Sequence record: LC778249.1
DNA: 64,000 bases
Strand: one strand, 5' to 3'
The notes below the pieces were generated by a model. That model was not told where the DNA came from and did no database searches. It saw only the letters and a list, made by a program, of their open reading frames with translations. The position numbers and the translations under genes were made by a program. The number at the start of each line of letters is the position of its first letter. Within the stretch, counting starts at the first letter, position 1. Positions 2,195-43,922 of the stretch are shown in pieces.

Positions 2195-2257
2195 ATGTTT
2201 ATTATGAGAATCAAAAGCGTTAAACTAATCAAACCTGACAAGAAAAGGAAACTGTAA
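2195..2257 (+). CDS. possible 20-aa basic peptide
   Basis: AAGGAG SD, ATG..TAA (MFIMRIKSVKLIKPDKKRKL), ends 1 nt before rIIB. Confidence 0.3.
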   Translation: MFIMRIKSVKLIKPDKKRKL

Positions 2258-2258
2258 A

Positions 2259-3557
2259 ATGGCTAAACTGACTGAACAACAAAAAGCACGTATTCTGGCT
2301 GGCACTCTGGGTCGTGGCGTACTGGCTCGCGAACTGAACATCGGCGAATCCGCAGCTCGTAAAATGATCGAACTCGTAAAAGAAGAAGATCGACTGGCTA
2401 AGGCAAAACAGCCGAGCAACGGTGTTACCGAAGCTATGCGCAAAGAGATTCTGGAAGGCAAACTGGGTCGCACTGTTCTGGCCAAGCGTCTGAATATCAA
2501 AGAATCCGAAGCTCGCAAGATCATCGAAGCAATTCGTGGTAACGTAGCTCCGGCAACTAAAGCCGCACCAGTTGCTAAACCTGCTGTTGTTGCTCCGAAA
2601 GCCGCTCCGGTTGTACCGAAGAAAGAGGACACCCATCTGGGCGCTCGATTTCACGAAGCAGACAAACGAGCTGACGAGCGAGACGCAAAAATCGTCGAAC
2701 TCTATACCACCGGTGAGTACAAGTCCCAAAAGACTGTCGCATCCCTGGTTGGTTGCTCTGAAAGCACTGTTGGTGAAGTTCTCAAGCGTAAAGGCGTAAA
2801 AGCCCGTCGTCCTGGTTCTCCGGCTGTTGCACCGGTTGAGACTCCGAAAGAACTCAAGTGGTTCGCGTCTACCAAGTTCATCAACATCATGGCAGACGGT
2901 AAGACTTACACTGCCGATAGCAGTCACGAACAGTTCCGCAAAGCTCTGGATCTGTGTATCGCTGGTGATGTTCTGAAAGCTCTGGGTCTGATCAACGTTG
3001 CTAAGGGTGTTAGCTCTTATGCTAAAGGTCAACTCAAGGTAGAAAATGATGTTGTTACTTATAAGGGTCTGGAAATTGGTGGTTCTGTTGTAAAGCGTAT
3101 CATCAGCAACATGCACGATGGTAAGCCGTTCGGTCACCTGGTAGCGTTTCTCGAAAAACTGCTGCTGAATCCGAACAAGAAAGCAATCGAAGGCCTGTTT
3201 GACTTCCTTGAGCACAACGACATCGAAATCACCACCGACGGTTTCGTCCATGCTTATCGTCGTTGCACTACCGATTATAAAGACTTTTATACCGGTAAGC
3301 TTTCAAACAAAGTAGGTGAAACGGTTAAACTGGATCGTGCTAAGTGTGACAGCTCCGACGCAACTTGTTCTGCCGGTCTCCACGTAGCAGCTCGACACTA
3401 CATCCCGAACTATCACGGTGGTCAAGGTCGTATTCTGCTGGTACAAGTTGATCCTCAGCATGTAGTAGCAGTTCCGAAAGACTACAAGGGCGCAAAAATG
3501 CGTTGCTGTGAGTTCAAGGTTCTGAAAGACATTACCAAAGAGTTTGGTAAGCACTAA
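2259..3557 (+). CDS. rIIB: rIIB protein
   Basis: N-terminal HTH-like repeats; C-terminal DFYTGK..VG..V..DR..CD....TCSAGLH; follows rIIA. Confidence 0.92.
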   Translation: MAKLTEQQKARILAGTLGRGVLARELNIGESAARKMIELVKEEDRLAKAKQPSNGVTEAMRKEILEGKLGRTVLAKRLNIKESEARKIIEAIRGNVAPATKAAPVAKPAVVAPKAAPVVPKKEDTHLGARFHEADKRADERDAKIVELYTTGEYKSQKTVASLVGCSESTVGEVLKRKGVKARRPGSPAVAPVETPKELKWFASTKFINIMADGKTYTADSSHEQFRKALDLCIAGDVLKALGLINVAKGVSSYAKGQLKVENDVVTYKGLEIGGSVVKRIISNMHDGKPFGHLVAFLEKLLLNPNKKAIEGLFDFLEHNDIEITTDGFVHAYRRCTTDYKDFYTGKLSNKVGETVKLDRAKCDSSDATCSAGLHVAARHYIPNYHGGQGRILLVQVDPQHVVAVPKDYKGAKMRCCEFKVLKDITKEFGKH

Positions 3558-3562
3558 TCATC

Positions 3563-3588
3563 AAAAGCCACCTTCGGGTGGCTTTTTT
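3563..3588 (+). terminator. intrinsic terminator
   Basis: AAAAGCCACC-TTCG-GGTGGCTTTTTT. Confidence 0.9.
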
Positions 3589-3601
3589 ATTTTAAAAAGT
3601 G

Positions 3602-3629
3602 TTGACTTGTGATTCTGAACCAGTATACT
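3602..3629 (+). promoter_or_regulatory. early promoter
   Basis: TTGACT-16-TATACT; -10 within palindrome CAGTATACTG; CACATC downstream. Confidence 0.75.
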
Positions 3630-3658
3630 GAGCACATCAACCAAAGAGAGTAAACAAA

Positions 3659-4225
3659 ATGAAATCATTTAAATCGTTTGTCGATTGCATTGAAGTAGAA
3701 AGCGGTGCACGTGGCAAATCGGATGCTGCGTTTGTCTGCTTCTACTGTGACAAAGTGCAGCCATATATCAATACAACCGACCCGACTTTCCCAGAAGACA
3801 AGAAGCACGTTTGGGCACACAAAATCCTTCTGAATGTTCGTTGGGATTCTCGTTTCGGCTTCCCGGGTGGTATGGTAGATGAAGGCGAAAGCCTGATCGA
3901 AGCTGCGGTGCGCGAATGCAAAGAAGAAATTGGATACACTCCGAATCCAGATCATCTGCTGCATCTTTGCACACACAAGATTCCTGAAAGTGGTATGCAT
4001 TGCCACCTGTATATGTGCCGTGTTTCTGAGGAAGCACTGTATGACATGCAACGTTCGGCAATGGATGCGACCCACTCGCGTATCGAAGCTTTCGGAAACG
4101 CGGTAGCGCATCTGACACCACCGACAATCAAACAAATGAAGCACGCCAACTGTGCTCGTACCGTGAAAGCCGAACTGGTAGAAGTATTCGACTTTCTGGG
4201 CGTTGACTATGACTGGAGCAACTGA
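3659..4225 (+). CDS. Nudix hydrolase, NUDT16-like
   Basis: Nudix box GGMVDEGESLIEAAVRECKEEIG preceded by LLNVRWDSRFGFPGG. Confidence 0.85.
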   Translation: MKSFKSFVDCIEVESGARGKSDAAFVCFYCDKVQPYINTTDPTFPEDKKHVWAHKILLNVRWDSRFGFPGGMVDEGESLIEAAVRECKEEIGYTPNPDHLLHLCTHKIPESGMHCHLYMCRVSEEALYDMQRSAMDATHSRIEAFGNAVAHLTPPTIKQMKHANCARTVKAELVEVFDFLGVDYDWSN

Positions 4226-4226
4226 T

Positions 4227-4448
4227 ATGACAATGAAACTCACTGTACCGCAGATGTACGATCTTATCCGCAAGAGCATTTGCGAGACAAGCGACCAATA
4301 CCGTTTTGGTCAAGCGTTGTTCAACAACTTGCCAACGGAACTGGCGGATTCAATCAGAGGTACCGATAAGGATTTCTTCTATTGGGATAACAAACGTCAA
4401 CAAGAGATCATCCAATACTGTTATGATCATATGACGTTCTCCTGTTAA
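4227..4448 (+). CDS. hypothetical protein
   Basis: GGAG SD, ORF coupled to the Nudix gene. Confidence 0.7.
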   Translation: MTMKLTVPQMYDLIRKSICETSDQYRFGQALFNNLPTELADSIRGTDKDFFYWDNKRQQEIIQYCYDHMTFSC

Positions 4449-4562
4449 TAGGAAGACATTGGAGCGATTCCTAGCGATAGTCTATGCGATGATATCAATT
4501 AGTTAAGGAATCGCTCCAAATCGATTTGATGAATAGATAGTATAATAATTAAACTCCAAAAT

Positions 4563-4691
4563 GTCGCGCCAGCGACTGCGAAGCTAATCTATTGATTTCT
4601 AACGAAAAGACAAAGTAAATTCTCATATAAGATATATAAGAGATTTTATTTTCTCTTTTTGTTACATAGTAACAATTAGCGGCTATGCCGC
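4563..4691. repeat. hairpin-bracketed AT-rich element, copy A
   Basis: Core 4604-4667 matches the reverse complement of 49444-49507 at 58/64; terminal hairpins GTCGC-GCCA-GCGAC and GCGGC-TAT-GCCGC. Confidence 0.9.
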
Positions 4692-4695
4692 AGTG

Positions 4696-4724
4696 TTGAC
4701 ACACGTTAGCTAGTGTGTAATAAT
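4696..4724 (+). promoter_or_regulatory. early promoter for ndd
   Basis: GTGTTGACA..TGTAATAAT; same flanks as the promoter at 49602. Confidence 0.7.
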
Positions 4725-4751
4725 TTGATCTCTACTTAATGAGGTAATGAA

Positions 4752-5258
4752 ATGAAATTGAATACCAATCTCCTTATAGGAAATGCACTGTATATCGGTA
4801 CTCTGTTCCCTAACAAAACTGGCATTCTGGAGTTTACTCCTGGCCAAATTGCTCGGGTACCTGTGAATCACGATCTGACTACTCCTGGTTTCTATCTGAT
4901 CGCTACTTTCCCGACTAATGACGCTCGCCTGCGCGATATCGTTAGCGTAAACCACGTCGGTATTCAGAAACGCAAAACTGGCTTTAAGGAAGTTCTGCGT
5001 CGCTTGAATAATCCGCGTACCGAGCAAAACAAAGCATTGGGCGATTACTTGTGCAAGCGATCTACCGAAATCTTCACCGATGCCAGTATCGTAAAAGCTT
5101 GGCGTGAGGTAGAAGCAAAACATCAAGTGTTCTTCGTGTCCTACGCACAAATGCGCGACCTGCTTGGTATCGAAGAATACAGCGCGAAAAACAACGGTAT
5201 CGCTATGATCACCGAGCTTCGCACCAAATATGACTTTATTGGTCGTCTGAAATCCTGA
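4752..5258 (+). CDS. ndd: nucleoid disruption protein Ndd
   Basis: PGFY...HVGIQKRKTGFKEVL resembles T4 Ndd PGFY...YVGNQRSKQGFSAVL; lies between rIIB and 52. Confidence 0.75.
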   Translation: MKLNTNLLIGNALYIGTLFPNKTGILEFTPGQIARVPVNHDLTTPGFYLIATFPTNDARLRDIVSVNHVGIQKRKTGFKEVLRRLNNPRTEQNKALGDYLCKRSTEIFTDASIVKAWREVEAKHQVFFVSYAQMRDLLGIEEYSAKNNGIAMITELRTKYDFIGRLKS

Positions 5259-5260
5259 TG

Positions 5261-5304
5261 TTGACATCTTCAAACAGCCGTGTATAATATCCTGACTGTT
5301 TGAA
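5261..5304 (+). promoter_or_regulatory. early promoter for gene 52 with a 9-bp inverted repeat
   Basis: TTGACA-16-TATAAT; TTCAAACAG(5269)/CTGTTTGAA(5296). Confidence 0.8.
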
Positions 5305-5316
5305 AAGAGGTAAAGA

Positions 5317-6633
5317 ATGCAAGTAACTAAACGTGGAATATCTAGTCTAGTCAATAACGAAGCAAAAGAATTTGCGATGTATACCATTGAGGAACGCGCT
5401 CTACCAAGCATGATAGACGGTCTAAAACCGGTACAACGTTATATTCTTTATAGCGTGTTGAAGAATGCTGGCAAGTCTTTCAAGAAGAATGCTGCAATCG
5501 CTGGTGTGATCTCTGAGTATGGTTACAACCACGGCGAAGTTGCTGCCATGGATGCCGCATGTTTGATGGCTTCTACTTGGAACAACAACTTCCCTATTAT
5601 TCAGGGTCAAGGTAACTTCGGTTCCCGAGCTGTGCAAGAGGGTGCGGCAGCGCGTTATATCTTCTGTACCAAGCACGATCAATTCGATAGCATGTTCAAA
5701 GATATGGAGCTGCTGGAAGAGTCTACCGCTGATGGTTCTGAACTCCCACGCTACTATCTGCCGATTCTGCCAACTGTTCTGCTGAACGGTGTTAGCGGTA
5801 TTGCAACTGGATTTGCTACCAAGATTCTGCCACATAGCTTGGTGAGTGTTGCTAAGTGTGTTGAGCAAGTTCTTAAAACTGGTAAGTGCGACGAACCACA
5901 GATTCAGTTCCCGCTGTTCTATGGTAAAATCACTCCTGTTGTCGATAAGAATCAAGCTTGGACACTGGAAGGCTGTTATGAACTTAGCGGTAAAACTAAG
6001 TTGACAATCAGCGAGATTCCAGTAAAATATGATCGCGTTAAGTATGTGACTTTACTGGATAAGCTGGTAGAGACCGACAAGATTGTTGGCTATGACGAGT
6101 CCAAAATGGATGATCGTGAGTTCTGTTTCAAGATCACGCTAAAGCGTGATTTCGATACCAGTCACGAAAACATCATTAAGACTTTCAAACTGGCTCAGAA
6201 TGTGTCACAATACATTCGCGTAATCGATCAAAACGGCGATTTGAAGCCATACGAAAAAGCTTCTGATCTGATTGTTGATTTCGTGAATTATCGCTTCGGC
6301 ATCTTGCAAAAGCGAATCGATAATGCTATTGTAGCAACGACTGAGAAACTTGGATATGCTCAAGCTAAGGTAGAGTTTATCAAGCTTGTGCTAGACGAGA
6401 AGATCAAGTTCCATAAACAGACTCGCAAGCAAGTAATCGAACAGATTCAAGCTTTCGATAGTCTGAAAGACTATGCCGAACAACTGGTGCAAATGAACTT
6501 GTACCACATGACGGAAGACGAATTGACTAAGCTAGAAAAGCAAGTCACCGAGTTGACCAAAGAAAACGACTTCTGGAAGAACACTTCTCCCAAGAAGCAA
6601 TACCAATCTGACATCAAGGAATTTTTGAAATGA
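5317..6633 (+). CDS. 52: DNA topoisomerase II medium subunit gp52
   Basis: RALPSMIDGLKPVQR, YNHGE, GNFGSR..GAAARY catalytic Tyr motif. Confidence 0.96.
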   Translation: MQVTKRGISSLVNNEAKEFAMYTIEERALPSMIDGLKPVQRYILYSVLKNAGKSFKKNAAIAGVISEYGYNHGEVAAMDAACLMASTWNNNFPIIQGQGNFGSRAVQEGAAARYIFCTKHDQFDSMFKDMELLEESTADGSELPRYYLPILPTVLLNGVSGIATGFATKILPHSLVSVAKCVEQVLKTGKCDEPQIQFPLFYGKITPVVDKNQAWTLEGCYELSGKTKLTISEIPVKYDRVKYVTLLDKLVETDKIVGYDESKMDDREFCFKITLKRDFDTSHENIIKTFKLAQNVSQYIRVIDQNGDLKPYEKASDLIVDFVNYRFGILQKRIDNAIVATTEKLGYAQAKVEFIKLVLDEKIKFHKQTRKQVIEQIQAFDSLKDYAEQLVQMNLYHMTEDELTKLEKQVTELTKENDFWKNTSPKKQYQSDIKEFLK

Positions 6634-6905
6634 GTATTTTTTCATTCTGGCAAGCTGCACAACGCCGTGTTCGTGAATTCGCAGGTGATGCTGAACTGAC
6701 TATCGGTCCTCGTCCGCTGACTGCAATTGTTGAGCAACTGGAACAAACTGTTACCGAGCTGAAAGAGCGTCAAGCCGATGATATTGCACAAGTAGAGCAA
6801 CTGGACAAAGACATCGCCGTTATCCAAAAGCGTCAAGCCAACAAGCGTCAAGATGCGGAACGCGCCGGTCGTATCGCACAGAAGTTCGAGGAACTGCTGA
6901 AATGA
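6630..6905 (+). CDS. hypothetical coiled-coil protein
   Basis: Overlaps the 52 stop; heptad-rich. Confidence 0.7.
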   Translation: MSIFSFWQAAQRRVREFAGDAELTIGPRPLTAIVEQLEQTVTELKERQADDIAQVEQLDKDIAVIQKRQANKRQDAERAGRIAQKFEELLK

Positions 6906-42064: not shown

Positions 42065-43117
42065 ATGAAAATGTATGACAAAGCTGTAGTAAACGGTCGG
42101 TATCAAATCAACCACATCGGCCATCTGGAAATGATTCGCGTTGCAATGAGCGTTGCACAAAAGGTATACATCATCCTGGGTTCTGCGAATGCGTTTCCGA
42201 ATATGAAAAACCCATTCCGTCCTGCTGAACGTGAGGCAATGCTTCGTGTCGCGATGAAAGACTACGGTCTGAATCCGAACGATGTATACTTCCGTTATGT
42301 GGATGACAGCAATTACACCAACGAACGTTGGCAAGCTGATATCCGCGACGCGGTAGACGAACAAATGGGCGACAAGATCACCATGGTTGGTAACAAGAAA
42401 GACAAGAACAGTTGGTGGCTGGAGACTTTTGGCTGGGAACTGACTGAGATCGAATGTCAGATGCACAACGGTAAGCCGATCAGTGCAACTTTCATCCGTG
42501 ATTCTTTCTTTGATCCTGCATTTGACTTTGAAAGTCTGCACAGCGAGATCGTTACTCCGGGTGTGATTGCTTGGCTGAAATCCTACAAAGTCAAGAAAGC
42601 AGAAGAATACAATCGACTGGCTAAAGAACATCAGCACAACAAAAAAGAACTCAAGAAGATGGAAGCGTATCCATATCGTGAGGCTCTGAACTGCTCTACT
42701 GGTGATGCCGTCGTTACTTGCAATGGTCACCTGCTCGTTACAATTCGTGGTAATCTTCCTGGTTTGGGTGCGTATGCACTGCCTGGTGGTCACAAGAATG
42801 AAGACGAGACCTATAAAGAATGTGCGATTCGCGAACTGCGCGAGGAAGTACGTCTTAAAGTGCCGGAGCGCGTAATTCGTGGTTCGGTCAAGAAAGAGAA
42901 GATTTTCGACTATCCGGGACGTAGCTATCCGATCTGCAAACCGACTCTGGCTCTGTATATCGAACTGCAACCCGATGCTGATGGTAAACTGCCAGCGGTT
43001 AAGCCGCGCGATGAAGTTCGCGATGTATTCTGGATGCCAATGCACATGGTACGCCGTAACCGTCACAACTTCTTTGATGATCATTATGAAATAGTTTCCT
43101 ATTTTTGCGGCATCTAA
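42065..43117 (+). CDS. bifunctional NMN adenylyltransferase / ADP-ribose pyrophosphatase (NadM-Nudix, NatV-like)
   Basis: GRYQINHIGH, GSAN..KNPF; C-terminal LPGGH..ET..ECAIRELREEV, FFDDHYEI. Confidence 0.92.
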   Translation: MKMYDKAVVNGRYQINHIGHLEMIRVAMSVAQKVYIILGSANAFPNMKNPFRPAEREAMLRVAMKDYGLNPNDVYFRYVDDSNYTNERWQADIRDAVDEQMGDKITMVGNKKDKNSWWLETFGWELTEIECQMHNGKPISATFIRDSFFDPAFDFESLHSEIVTPGVIAWLKSYKVKKAEEYNRLAKEHQHNKKELKKMEAYPYREALNCSTGDAVVTCNGHLLVTIRGNLPGLGAYALPGGHKNEDETYKECAIRELREEVRLKVPERVIRGSVKKEKIFDYPGRSYPICKPTLALYIELQPDADGKLPAVKPRDEVRDVFWMPMHMVRRNRHNFFDDHYEIVSYFCGI

Positions 43118-43123
43118 TAACAA

Positions 43124-43155
43124 GAAAGGCGAGTCAATGACTCGCCTTTTCTTTT
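43124..43155. terminator. bidirectional terminator overlapping the HNH stop
   Basis: AAAGGCGAGTC-AAT-GACTCGCCTTT with A/T tracts on both sides. Confidence 0.8.
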
Positions 43156-43835
43156 TCTGCTCTGCGTCTTGCGTTGTAAGCTAAACCGGCAAGTCGTCTG
43201 ATTTCTTTATTTTCTTCCGACATTGGCTTTCCTTTCTTAGCCGCACTCATGTTTGCTTTGCTTTCTTCTGAATGCGTTCTGCCTTTATTTTTGGAACTAA
43301 TTAATTGTCGTCTTTCCTTATCCTTCATTCTTTCTTCGTCTGTCATAGATTCAAGTCGTTTTTTATGTGCGGCTGACATCTTCAATTTAGTTTCATCCGA
43401 CAACTTTCTTCCCTTATTCATTTCACCCATACGCTTCGAATTATTCAGTTGCTTTTCTGTTCTAGGTATAGTAGAATGACCAATGATAAGTTTTTTCTTA
43501 TGTTCTTCTGTTATCGTTTTGCCCTTATGCAGATTACTGGTGTATATTGCATAATCGCGTTTTAGCCAGCCGAACAACTTGTTATTAACTCGCTTATCGT
43601 TCTTAGAACGAGTCATTATCCTAGCAGCAACGATAAGCGATGAAACTTCCGGGTGCATCTTAACGAGCAGTTGGTGAGCCAAGAAGTGTTCTTCTGGAGT
43701 TAGAATAGCTATATTGCTAGGATCATTACTTCCACCCATGCATTTTGGGAGAATGTGGTGTTTTTCTGTATAGCCTTCGATAACTCTATCAATAGAGCGG
43801 TCTATCAAAGACTTGTAAATTTTATGATAATTCAT
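43134..43835 (-). mobile_element. free-standing HNH homing endonuclease with NUMOD3-type repeats
   Basis: EKHHILPKCMGGSND..NIAILTPEEHFLAH; H(S/T)EE(S/H)K..MS..KG repeats; AT-rich; antisense orientation. Confidence 0.88.
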
Positions 43836-43922
43836 TTGATGTTCCCGATTACACACGACACTGATAAAGTGGAAGGGGCGTGTCGGGATACCCTTTTCGA
43901 ATGGCCGTTCTATCCACAATGA

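Follow-up and report, generated by a model that had tools for sequence, protein, structure and literature searches.

The question raised by the open reading frame (ORF) at 3659-4225 of a stretch of 64,000 nucleotides (hereafter the window), taken from sequence record LC778249.1, is what kind of Nudix hydrolase a phage gene named after T4 NudE really encodes, and which substrate this enzyme could act on. Judging from where the matches fall, the window makes up the final 64 kb of the record of Aeromonas phage phiWae14. Bases 2200-6700, which include the gene, match phiWae14 with 100% identity and phiAS5 (Straboviridae, Chrysonvirus; T4-like) with 99.6%, while the identity to Aeh1, PX29, Ah1 and the AsFcp phages is 76-78%. 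The extent of the gene is as the first-pass annotation of the window had given it:

3659-4225, plus strand: NUDT16-family Nudix gene, 188 amino acids (aa), an ATG-to-TGA ORF; in phiAS5, Aeh1 and PX29 it bears the annotation 'NudE nudix hydrolase'

It is well supported by computation that this gene encodes an intact, catalytically competent Nudix pyrophosphatase that belongs to the NUDT16 family and is under strong constraint. For its role, the reading that we favour, with a probability of roughly 0.4, is that the enzyme clears deaminated or 6-oxopurine nucleotides early in infection.

The assignment of the protein to the NUDT16 family was confirmed by sequence profile and predicted fold, reflecting homology and not chance. 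The Pfam family PF22327 (Nudt16-like) was matched with E = 5e-14 and 53 bits (cut-off 27), the generic NUDIX model scoring lower at 46 bits, and phmmer against PDB sequences retrieved human NUDT16 chains (E about 2e-5, residues 54-146). A word-indexed protein search recovered the PX29 cluster alone; an exhaustive HMMER protein search was therefore used, which returned 625 cluster representatives at E <= 1e-3. The family alignment consists of the query and 65 of these representatives (66 sequences), and PF22327 was matched by 66/66 of the aligned relatives. In a search with the profile made from it, NUDT16/X29 scored E = 1e-25 to 2e-24, TIRR scored 5e-17, and the best other Nudix protein reached 4e-12. 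An AlphaFold2 model from the same alignment (pLDDT 94.7, pTM 0.90) was searched against the PDB with Foldseek, and the top 39 matches were all NUDT16, X29 or TIRR/syndesmos (TM 0.65-0.76, E about 1e-11), followed below rank 39 by CoA pyrophosphatase, RppH and MutT-like proteins (TM 0.42-0.59). A nematode NUDT16, so named in UniRef, was also recovered directly by the phage query, at rank 86 with E = 4e-11.

The first-pass annotation had proposed the likeness to NUDT16, over T4 NudE, from three motif strings, all of which are present in the translation (residues 57-74, 116-127 and 139-146). The proposal held: Pfam, the family profile and Foldseek all favour NUDT16, and in the structural comparison that had been suggested as a check, the places where other Nudix clades might have appeared, the best 39 PDB matches, were taken by NUDT16, X29 and TIRR. 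A chance resemblance of motifs was ruled out by the Pfam score, the family profile and the Foldseek ranks. Judged by its best matches and its pocket, the protein appears to lie outside the metazoan NUDT16 orthologue group, these matches being phage or metagenomic proteins and its pocket being of the Phe/Glu type, not His/Gln. NCBIfam gave sub-threshold generic Nudix matches only, and with PADLOC there was a weak match of the core Nudix region to the candidate system PDC-S07, which was judged uninformative. The family link is already in databases, where both the PX29 homologue (UniRef) and the homologue of Aeromonas phage 4_4572 (UniProt) are named 'U8 snoRNA-decapping enzyme'; the protein thus adds a mis-annotated member to a family already known and does not represent a novel type of system. 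Purifying selection on the gene is strong, with a ratio of non-synonymous to synonymous substitution rates (dN/dS) of 0.024-0.058 and a dS of 1.5-2.1 in comparisons with Ah1, PX29 and Aeh1.

For the active site, the numbering of human NUDT16 was mapped via the nematode NUDT16 (chained alignments) and the predicted model, and residue roles were taken from the structure papers on NUDT16 with inosine monophosphate (IMP) (PMC4485890) and with ADP-ribose (ADPR) (PMC6459841). Column shares refer to 151 family sequences, or to the 66-sequence alignment where this is said. The parts of the active site and the pocket lie along the gene as follows:

3719-3757, plus strand: segment with F25 in the place that His24, which stacks on the purine, takes in human NUDT16 (model secondary structure, nematode mapping)
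3839-3865, plus strand: R61-W-D63...G67-F68-P69, in which R61 and D63 are the counterparts of the phosphate-binding Arg50 and Asp52 of NUDT16, and G-F-P that of its Gly56-Phe57-Pro58
3869-3937, plus strand: complete Nudix box, G71-x5-E77-x7-R85-E86-C87-x-E89-E90-x-G92-Y93, with the metal-binding/catalytic residues E77, R85, E86, E89 and E90
4085-4087, plus strand: E143, the counterpart of Glu136 of NUDT16, which is the third glutamate of the metal site and lies outside the Nudix box (alignment; PMC4485890, PMC6459841)
4154-4174, plus strand: C-terminal helix with A166, T168 and E172, the counterparts of the purine-stacking and hydrogen-bonding Ile164, Ser166 and Gln170 of NUDT16 (nematode mapping)

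In the catalytic columns, E86 and E90 were found in 151/151 sequences and E89 in 150/151, and the Glu136 column (E143) holds Glu in 146/151. The phosphate-binding pair is Arg in 149/151 (R61) and Asp in 129/151 (D63), and in the G67-F68-P69 columns Phe is present in 131/151 and Pro in 91/151. At the purine, the His24 column (F25) holds Phe in 140/151 and His in 4/151, the four His-bearing sequences including a two-domain protein with a PF22327 score of 195 bits as well as the NUDT16 of the nematode. The Ile164 column (A166) is Ala in 46/66, the Ser166 column (T168) is Thr in 68 and Ser in 44 of 151 (36 and 18 of 66), and the Gln170 column (E172) is Glu in 122/151 and Gln in 11/151, with Glu in 61/66 of the smaller alignment. 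Compared with NUDT16, the phage pocket keeps R61, D63, G67-F68-P69 and E143, and the replacements of His24 by F25, Ser166 by T168 and Gln170 by E172 are conservative in kind but could affect specificity. The alignments and the model predict that the phage and microbial clade keeps the binding geometry of NUDT16, with the purine buried and the X moiety exposed to solvent.

Hypoxanthine is recognised in NUDT16 at its O6, by the backbone NH of the G-F-P motif, and at its N1-H, by Gln170; this backbone, together with the His24 and Gln170 positions, is the basis of the 6-oxopurine preference (PMC4485890). Human NUDT16 also takes the adenine of ADPR in the same pocket, weakly, with a Michaelis constant (Km) of about 0.8 mM (PMC6459841). 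By analogy, a carboxylate at E172 would accept N1-H of hypoxanthine or guanine and could not donate to adenine N1, and N1-H and O6 would commonly be read in this manner, by a carboxylate acceptor together with a backbone NH.

In the mechanism that we propose, the base of a purine nucleoside 5'-diphosphate would enter the pocket first and be buried there, as in NUDT16, stacked on F25 and A166 and read by the G67-F68-P69 backbone, T168 and E172. The phosphates would be held by R61 and D63, and Mg2+ on E86, E89, E90 and E143 would activate the water that cuts the diphosphate, releasing a purine nucleoside monophosphate, with the remainder of the substrate pointing toward solvent. The targets could be the inosine diphosphates and triphosphates, (d)IDP and (d)ITP, with guanosine polyphosphates as a further possibility, and they would be kept from phage DNA and RNA. 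The ITP and dITP coming from the host deaminase-based defences RADAR, Cad1 and Kongming could be lowered by the same activity.

Clearance of 6-oxopurine nucleotides is favoured because of the best-characterised activity of the family, the pocket, and a fusion to Ham1 beside purine genes, and also because of a Ham1 neighbour in a phage contig, fusions to HD_4 domains, and a separate NadM-type Nudix domain that is available for ADPR. The fusions were counted among the 150 best representatives. The Ham1 fusion (P0059, 391 aa, L006:6999-8174) is encoded in a metagenome-assembled genome of Candidatus Peribacteria (CAYVJW010000035.1) and joins a Ham1/RdgB ITPase to a Nudt16-like domain; its N-terminal half matches XTP/dITP diphosphatase models, and its gene is directly beside adenylosuccinate synthetase (purA) and near SAICAR synthase (purC). 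Two other relatives on metagenomic contigs (P0064 and P0111, on L099 and L158) are fused to a RelA/SpoT-type HD_4 domain, in both domain orders, which suggests that the two domains act together on polyphosphates of guanosine or adenosine, and on the phage-like contig of P0064 there is also a Ham1 gene of its own, located 4 kb upstream. The first-pass annotation had read the enzyme as an ADP-ribose eraser or a decapping anti-defence enzyme, and had named IDP/dIDP hydrolysis among the activities of NUDT16 but had not picked it as the role. The pocket, the Ham1 fusion by purA/purC and the Ham1 neighbour point to inosine/6-oxopurine nucleotides at least as strongly as to ADP-ribose derivatives. 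The NadM-type Nudix domain belongs to a second gene in the window, by which ADP-ribose hydrolysis in this phage is plausibly already covered:

42065-43117, plus strand: NatV/NadM-type gene, 350 aa, nicotinamide mononucleotide (NMN) adenylyltransferase with a generic Nudix domain; 'cytidyltransferase' in phiAS5

Several observations weigh against 6-oxopurine clearance. Human NUDT16 accepts adenine substrates in the same pocket, and the phage pocket therefore leaves room for ADP-ribose, while the H-to-F and Q-to-E changes may alter what this pocket takes. The Ham1-Nudt16-like fusion was found in 1 of 185,579 species-representative genomes and is thus from one bacterial lineage, and in phiAS5 the neighbours of the Nudix gene are uninformative and Ham1 is absent. 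NAD+ salvage genes (NadV/NatV) are the commonest neighbours of the relatives, joined in jumbo phages by Sir2, cREC and 2H/Acb1, and these point to NAD/ADP-ribose chemistry; one relative (P0075) is fused to an NMN adenylyltransferase (NMNAT)-like domain. In the literature search, no paper was found that discusses or assays phage NUDT16 homologues.

The alternative that survives best is a hydrolase of ADP-ribose derivatives, which we regard as unlikely, if still a serious contender. Here, the adenosine would be bound, the distal ribose left exposed and the pyrophosphate cut, alongside the NAD+ salvage and counter-defence genes of the phage. The candidate substrates would be free ADPR, the ADPR>p of NAD-dependent RNA repair, TIR/Thoeris-type signals, and ADP-ribose on protein or nucleic acid. 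An exposed distal ribose is also what the solved NUDT16-ADPR complexes show, consistent with such a binding mode. However, human NUDT16 is a poor ADPR enzyme, as its Km of about 0.8 mM indicates (PMC6459841), and a cut at the pyrophosphate leaves a phosphoribose scar, so that a macromolecular modification would not be reversed.

Much of what argues for ADP-ribose derivatives comes from the genomic contexts of relatives. The jumbo-phage homologues (31-32% identity), Serratia phage BF gp113, RaK2 nudE_1 and the one on contig L100, are the Nudix members of the Sir2-Nudix-cREC cluster and stand beside NatV, NadV, 2H/Acb1 and PIN-PhoH. This cluster has been predicted to process ADPr>p in NAD-dependent RNA repair (Iyer, Burroughs & Aravind 2022), in a paper that mentions NUDT16 0 times. 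BF gp113 contains Nudt16-like and cREC_REC domains, and a cREC fusion was recorded for one relative (P0098) in the fusion count. By local tblastn, NadV or full-length NatV was present within 6-10 kb in 7/15 contexts, an NMNAT-only match in 1 and neither in 7, in a sample that is small and partly redundant, 3 of the 7 positive contexts being from one jumbo-phage lineage. NadV and/or NatV are near the NUDT16-like gene on the phage-like contigs L004, L012 and L157. On contig L011, two anti-Pycsar Apyc1-type genes (L011:3369-6349) are located 0.7-3.6 kb upstream of the NUDT16-like gene, the nearer of them two genes away, with a NatV-like gene 2 kb downstream, and this region looks like a counter-defence island. 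The clustering with NAD genes may, however, simply reflect a common counter-defence island, and the Ham1 and HD_4 links do not fit ADP-ribose hydrolysis, for which NatV already supplies a NadM-type Nudix domain; the NMNAT-like fusion speaks for it. In a scan of IMG/VR with an 8-sequence alignment, most of the 80 loci matched over the Nudix box only (residues 43-95) and were left out of the neighbourhood statistics, L014-L020 alone being full-length, and a Pfam scan of the neighbours in the IMG/VR jumbo contigs L018 and L019 gave nothing useful.

Outside the Nudix locus, the phiAS5 genome carries NadV, NatV, an Alt-like ADP-ribosyltransferase and an ADP-ribosylglycohydrolase, which would favour ADP-ribose chemistry, together with a dNMP kinase, a MazG-like pyrophosphatase and a dUTPase. 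However, the Nudix gene is 38 kb from NatV, and Sir2 and cREC (RaK2 and BF queries) were absent from the window and from the whole phiAS5 genome by tblastn, as were Ham1, Apyc1 and the L100-type Acb1. NatV and NadV, elsewhere in the genome, could together provide an NAD+ salvage (NARP2-type) pathway. Beside NatV, at 43134-43919 on the minus strand, is a 261-aa ORF with an HNH-like histidine motif and a lysine/serine-rich repetitive C-terminal half, which resembles a homing endonuclease; in RaK2, an HNH endonuclease is likewise inserted between NatV and NadV.

More doubtful is the possibility that the enzyme removes caps from RNA 5' ends (NAD, FAD, dpCoA or NpnN caps, on host or phage transcripts) early in infection, altering RNA stability as a non-orthologous stand-in for T4 NudE.1. 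NUDT16 and X29 do decap RNA, metabolite caps included (PMC7337524), T4 NudE.1 removes NAD caps from RNA in vitro, and the NUDT16 binding mode would let the X moiety be an RNA chain (PMC6459841). The cREC-fused relatives have been tied to RNA-end processing (Iyer et al. 2022), and phiAS5 is without a T4-type NudE, 3659-4225 being its sole stand-alone Nudix gene. On the other hand, the protein is acidic (isoelectric point 5.65, with a median of about 5.2 in the clade), giving no hint of a basic surface for binding RNA, and RppH-type structures are second-tier Foldseek matches. Synteny with T4 nudE is lacking, the similarity between the two products is confined to the core Nudix region, and no context ties the stand-alone phage genes to RNA decay factors.

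That the product is an orthologue of T4 NudE (e.1), as annotated, with the same activity on ADPR, Ap3A and FAD, can hardly be right, and T4 NudE orthology was ruled out by PHROG, Pfam and the core-only alignment. The name is in GenBank and RefSeq records, the R-W-D motif is common to both proteins, and in hhalign the family profile matched T4 NudE with 97% probability over the Nudix core, although this alignment spans 73 core columns only. The phage protein belongs to phrog_9999 (E = 2e-81, compared with 2e-14 for phrog_1185), as does RaK2 nudE_1, whereas T4 NudE belongs to phrog_1185 (5e-74, compared with 4.5e-4 for phrog_9999) and matches the generic PF00293 only in Pfam. T4 NudE is also without the N-terminal strand, the four-residue insertion that makes G-F-P and the C-terminal helix. 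By tblastn at E <= 1e-5, no T-even phage was matched, and the positions differ, T4 nudE adjoining lysozyme e and the phage gene lying between rIIB and ndd-like/gp52. A tblastn search and a Nudix-box scan of the whole phiAS5 genome found no T4-type NudE and only two Nudix genes, namely 3659-4225, the stand-alone one, and the NatV-type NMNAT-Nudix gene at 42065-43117. To call the gene 'NudE', as GenBank and RefSeq records do, is a misnomer, because phiAS5 is without a T4-type NudE, and T4 NudE itself matches the generic Nudix model and another PHROG. The annotation in the Aeh1, PX29 and phiAS5 group is therefore wrong at the family level and conceals a distinct enzyme. As a separate observation, the gene that adjoins lysozyme in this phage (9186-9713, minus strand), the place of nudE in T4, encodes a DUF7338 protein (PF24027, E = 1.5e-49).

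If 6-oxopurine clearance were house-cleaning only, 3659-4225 would be an ordinary auxiliary gene. However, the location of relatives among counter-defence genes (NadV/NatV, Acb1, Apyc1, Sir2-cREC) fits an anti-defence role, for which ADP-ribose derivatives stay plausible, and the neighbourhoods with Acb1, Apyc1 and NadV/NatV fit a 6-oxopurine or an ADP-ribose substrate alike. The enzyme is a concrete candidate for nucleotide-clearing counter-defence because its relatives adjoin proven counter-defence genes (NadV/NatV, Acb1, Apyc1) and ITP-clearing enzymes. In RADAR, Cad1 and Kongming, ITP and dITP are known as products or signals of the defence. The authors of the Kongming study sought a factor in T5 that processes dITP, but what they found was a phosphatase that depletes dAMP. 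In the literature searched, no Nudix enzyme acting on Thoeris or RADAR products was found, and for the defences that make ITP/dITP there was no phage enzyme that degrades the signal.

A more far-reaching version of the same idea, which we consider a long shot, is that the phage clade with the Phe/Glu pocket consists of inosine-nucleotide erasers. These would hydrolyse (d)IDP and (d)ITP early in infection, breaking the relay from dAMP through dIMP and dIDP to dITP that triggers Kongming, and draining the ITP/dITP of RADAR and Cad1. If true, such an eraser would be the first known counter-defence enzyme that destroys a base-modified nucleotide signal or toxin. The clade is large (the 625 cluster representatives), extends across T4-like and jumbo phages and is strongly constrained.

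The timing that is part of the favoured role, early infection, touches on the surroundings of the gene. On the plus strand, the order is the large topoisomerase subunit, rIIA, rIIB, the Nudix gene, a 73-aa ORF, a 300-bp gap, the ndd-like gene and the gp52 topoisomerase, and the Nudix gene is thus in a block whose genes (rIIA, rIIB, ndd-like, topoisomerase) carry annotations of early functions of the T4 type. Its surroundings contain the following features:

2259-3557, plus strand: rIIB (phiAS5 annotation)
3563-3586, plus strand: terminator-like hairpin, a 10-pair stem followed by a T-run, which closes rIIB and marks the upstream edge of the Nudix transcription unit
3602-3629, plus strand: sigma-70-type promoter-like site, TTGACT-16 nt-TATACT, with 10/12 positions matched, about 30 nt upstream of the start codon
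4227-4448, plus strand: acidic 73-aa ORF, beginning one base past the Nudix stop codon; annotated, and conserved, in the phiAS5 record
4752-5258, plus strand: ndd-like gene (phiAS5 annotation)
5317-6633, plus strand: gp52 topoisomerase (phiAS5 annotation)

The first-pass annotation had also given the gene its own early promoter, and this claim stands in part. The site at 3602-3629 is there, and it is likely to be the early promoter of the Nudix gene, as predicted from sequence, because both hexamers are in register in the alignment with Ah1, PX29 and Aeh1 while their flanks have diverged. However, such sites occur no less often than by chance in this region, where 8 were found and 5.8 +/- 2.1 were expected. 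The hairpin at 3563-3586 is kept in Ah1 and Aeh1 by alignment.

The 73-aa ORF is probably co-transcribed with the Nudix gene; it had no Pfam or PADLOC match. A conserved small partner gene was considered and rejected, the ORFs downstream of the Nudix gene in different phages being mutually unrelated, and the 73-aa ORF being unrelated to them and to cREC. The 300-bp gap that follows (4449-4751) has no annotated gene and no Rfam match. It holds an 11-bp inverted repeat (about 4462-4472 and 4508-4518) right after the 73-aa ORF. At 4696-4724, ahead of the ndd-like gene, there is a promoter-like site that comes close to the consensus (TTGACA-17 nt-AATAAT, extended TG). The window as a whole (1-64000) contains zero tRNA genes and zero Rfam families at the gathering threshold.

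Among known systems, the closest are human NUDT16 and Xenopus X29 (PDB 3COU, 2XSQ, 5W6X and 1U20), which have the same fold as the model of the phage protein, including the N-terminal strand and the C-terminal helix (TM 0.72-0.76), and share with it the Nudix box, the third metal-site Glu, the Arg/Asp phosphate pair and the G-F-P motif. The identity to the phage protein is, however, only about 20-28%, and the purine-stacking His and the base-reading Gln of NUDT16 are replaced by Phe and Glu throughout the phage and microbial clade. The 'mouth' residue Phe61 of NUDT16 is Met in the phage protein and variable across the clade. NUDT16 is a homodimer in which the partner subunit lines the active site at its mouth (PMC4485890), and the phage protein was modelled as a monomer. 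Unlike NUDT16 and X29, the phage protein is acidic, and its bacterial host is without m7G caps or snoRNAs.

The jumbo-phage Nudix and Nudix-cREC proteins (BF gp113, RaK2 nudE_1 and that of Pectobacterium phage CBB) share PHROG 9999 and the Pfam domain with the phage protein at 31-32% identity, and are the best structural match of its model in BFVD (TM 0.81). They are fused to or trailed by cREC, in a cluster with Sir2, 2H/Acb1, NadV/NatV and PIN-PhoH, whereas the gene of the phiAS5 group is solitary. NatV/NadM of the KVP40 type is present in the same phage and is a frequent neighbour of NUDT16-like genes in other phages, but its Nudix domain matches the generic PF00293 only, is fused to NMNAT and belongs to another Nudix clade, whereas the protein of 3659-4225 has a single domain. 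T4 NudE (NudE.1), which has been described as RppH-like and monomeric, is likewise a phage Nudix hydrolase that shares the annotation name, the Nudix core and the R-W-D motif, but it has 151 aa, a different PHROG, no Nudt16-like Pfam match and a different genome position.

Ham1/RdgB/ITPA has an unrelated fold and no homology to the phage protein, and can be compared with it as a functional analogue. It is the partner of NUDT16 in mammals, where ITPA and NUDT16 are described as acting jointly on ITP and IDP. If the phage enzymes do erase inosine nucleotides, they would be using the same chemistry that animal cells use, through NUDT16 and ITPA, for the hygiene of their nucleotide pools.

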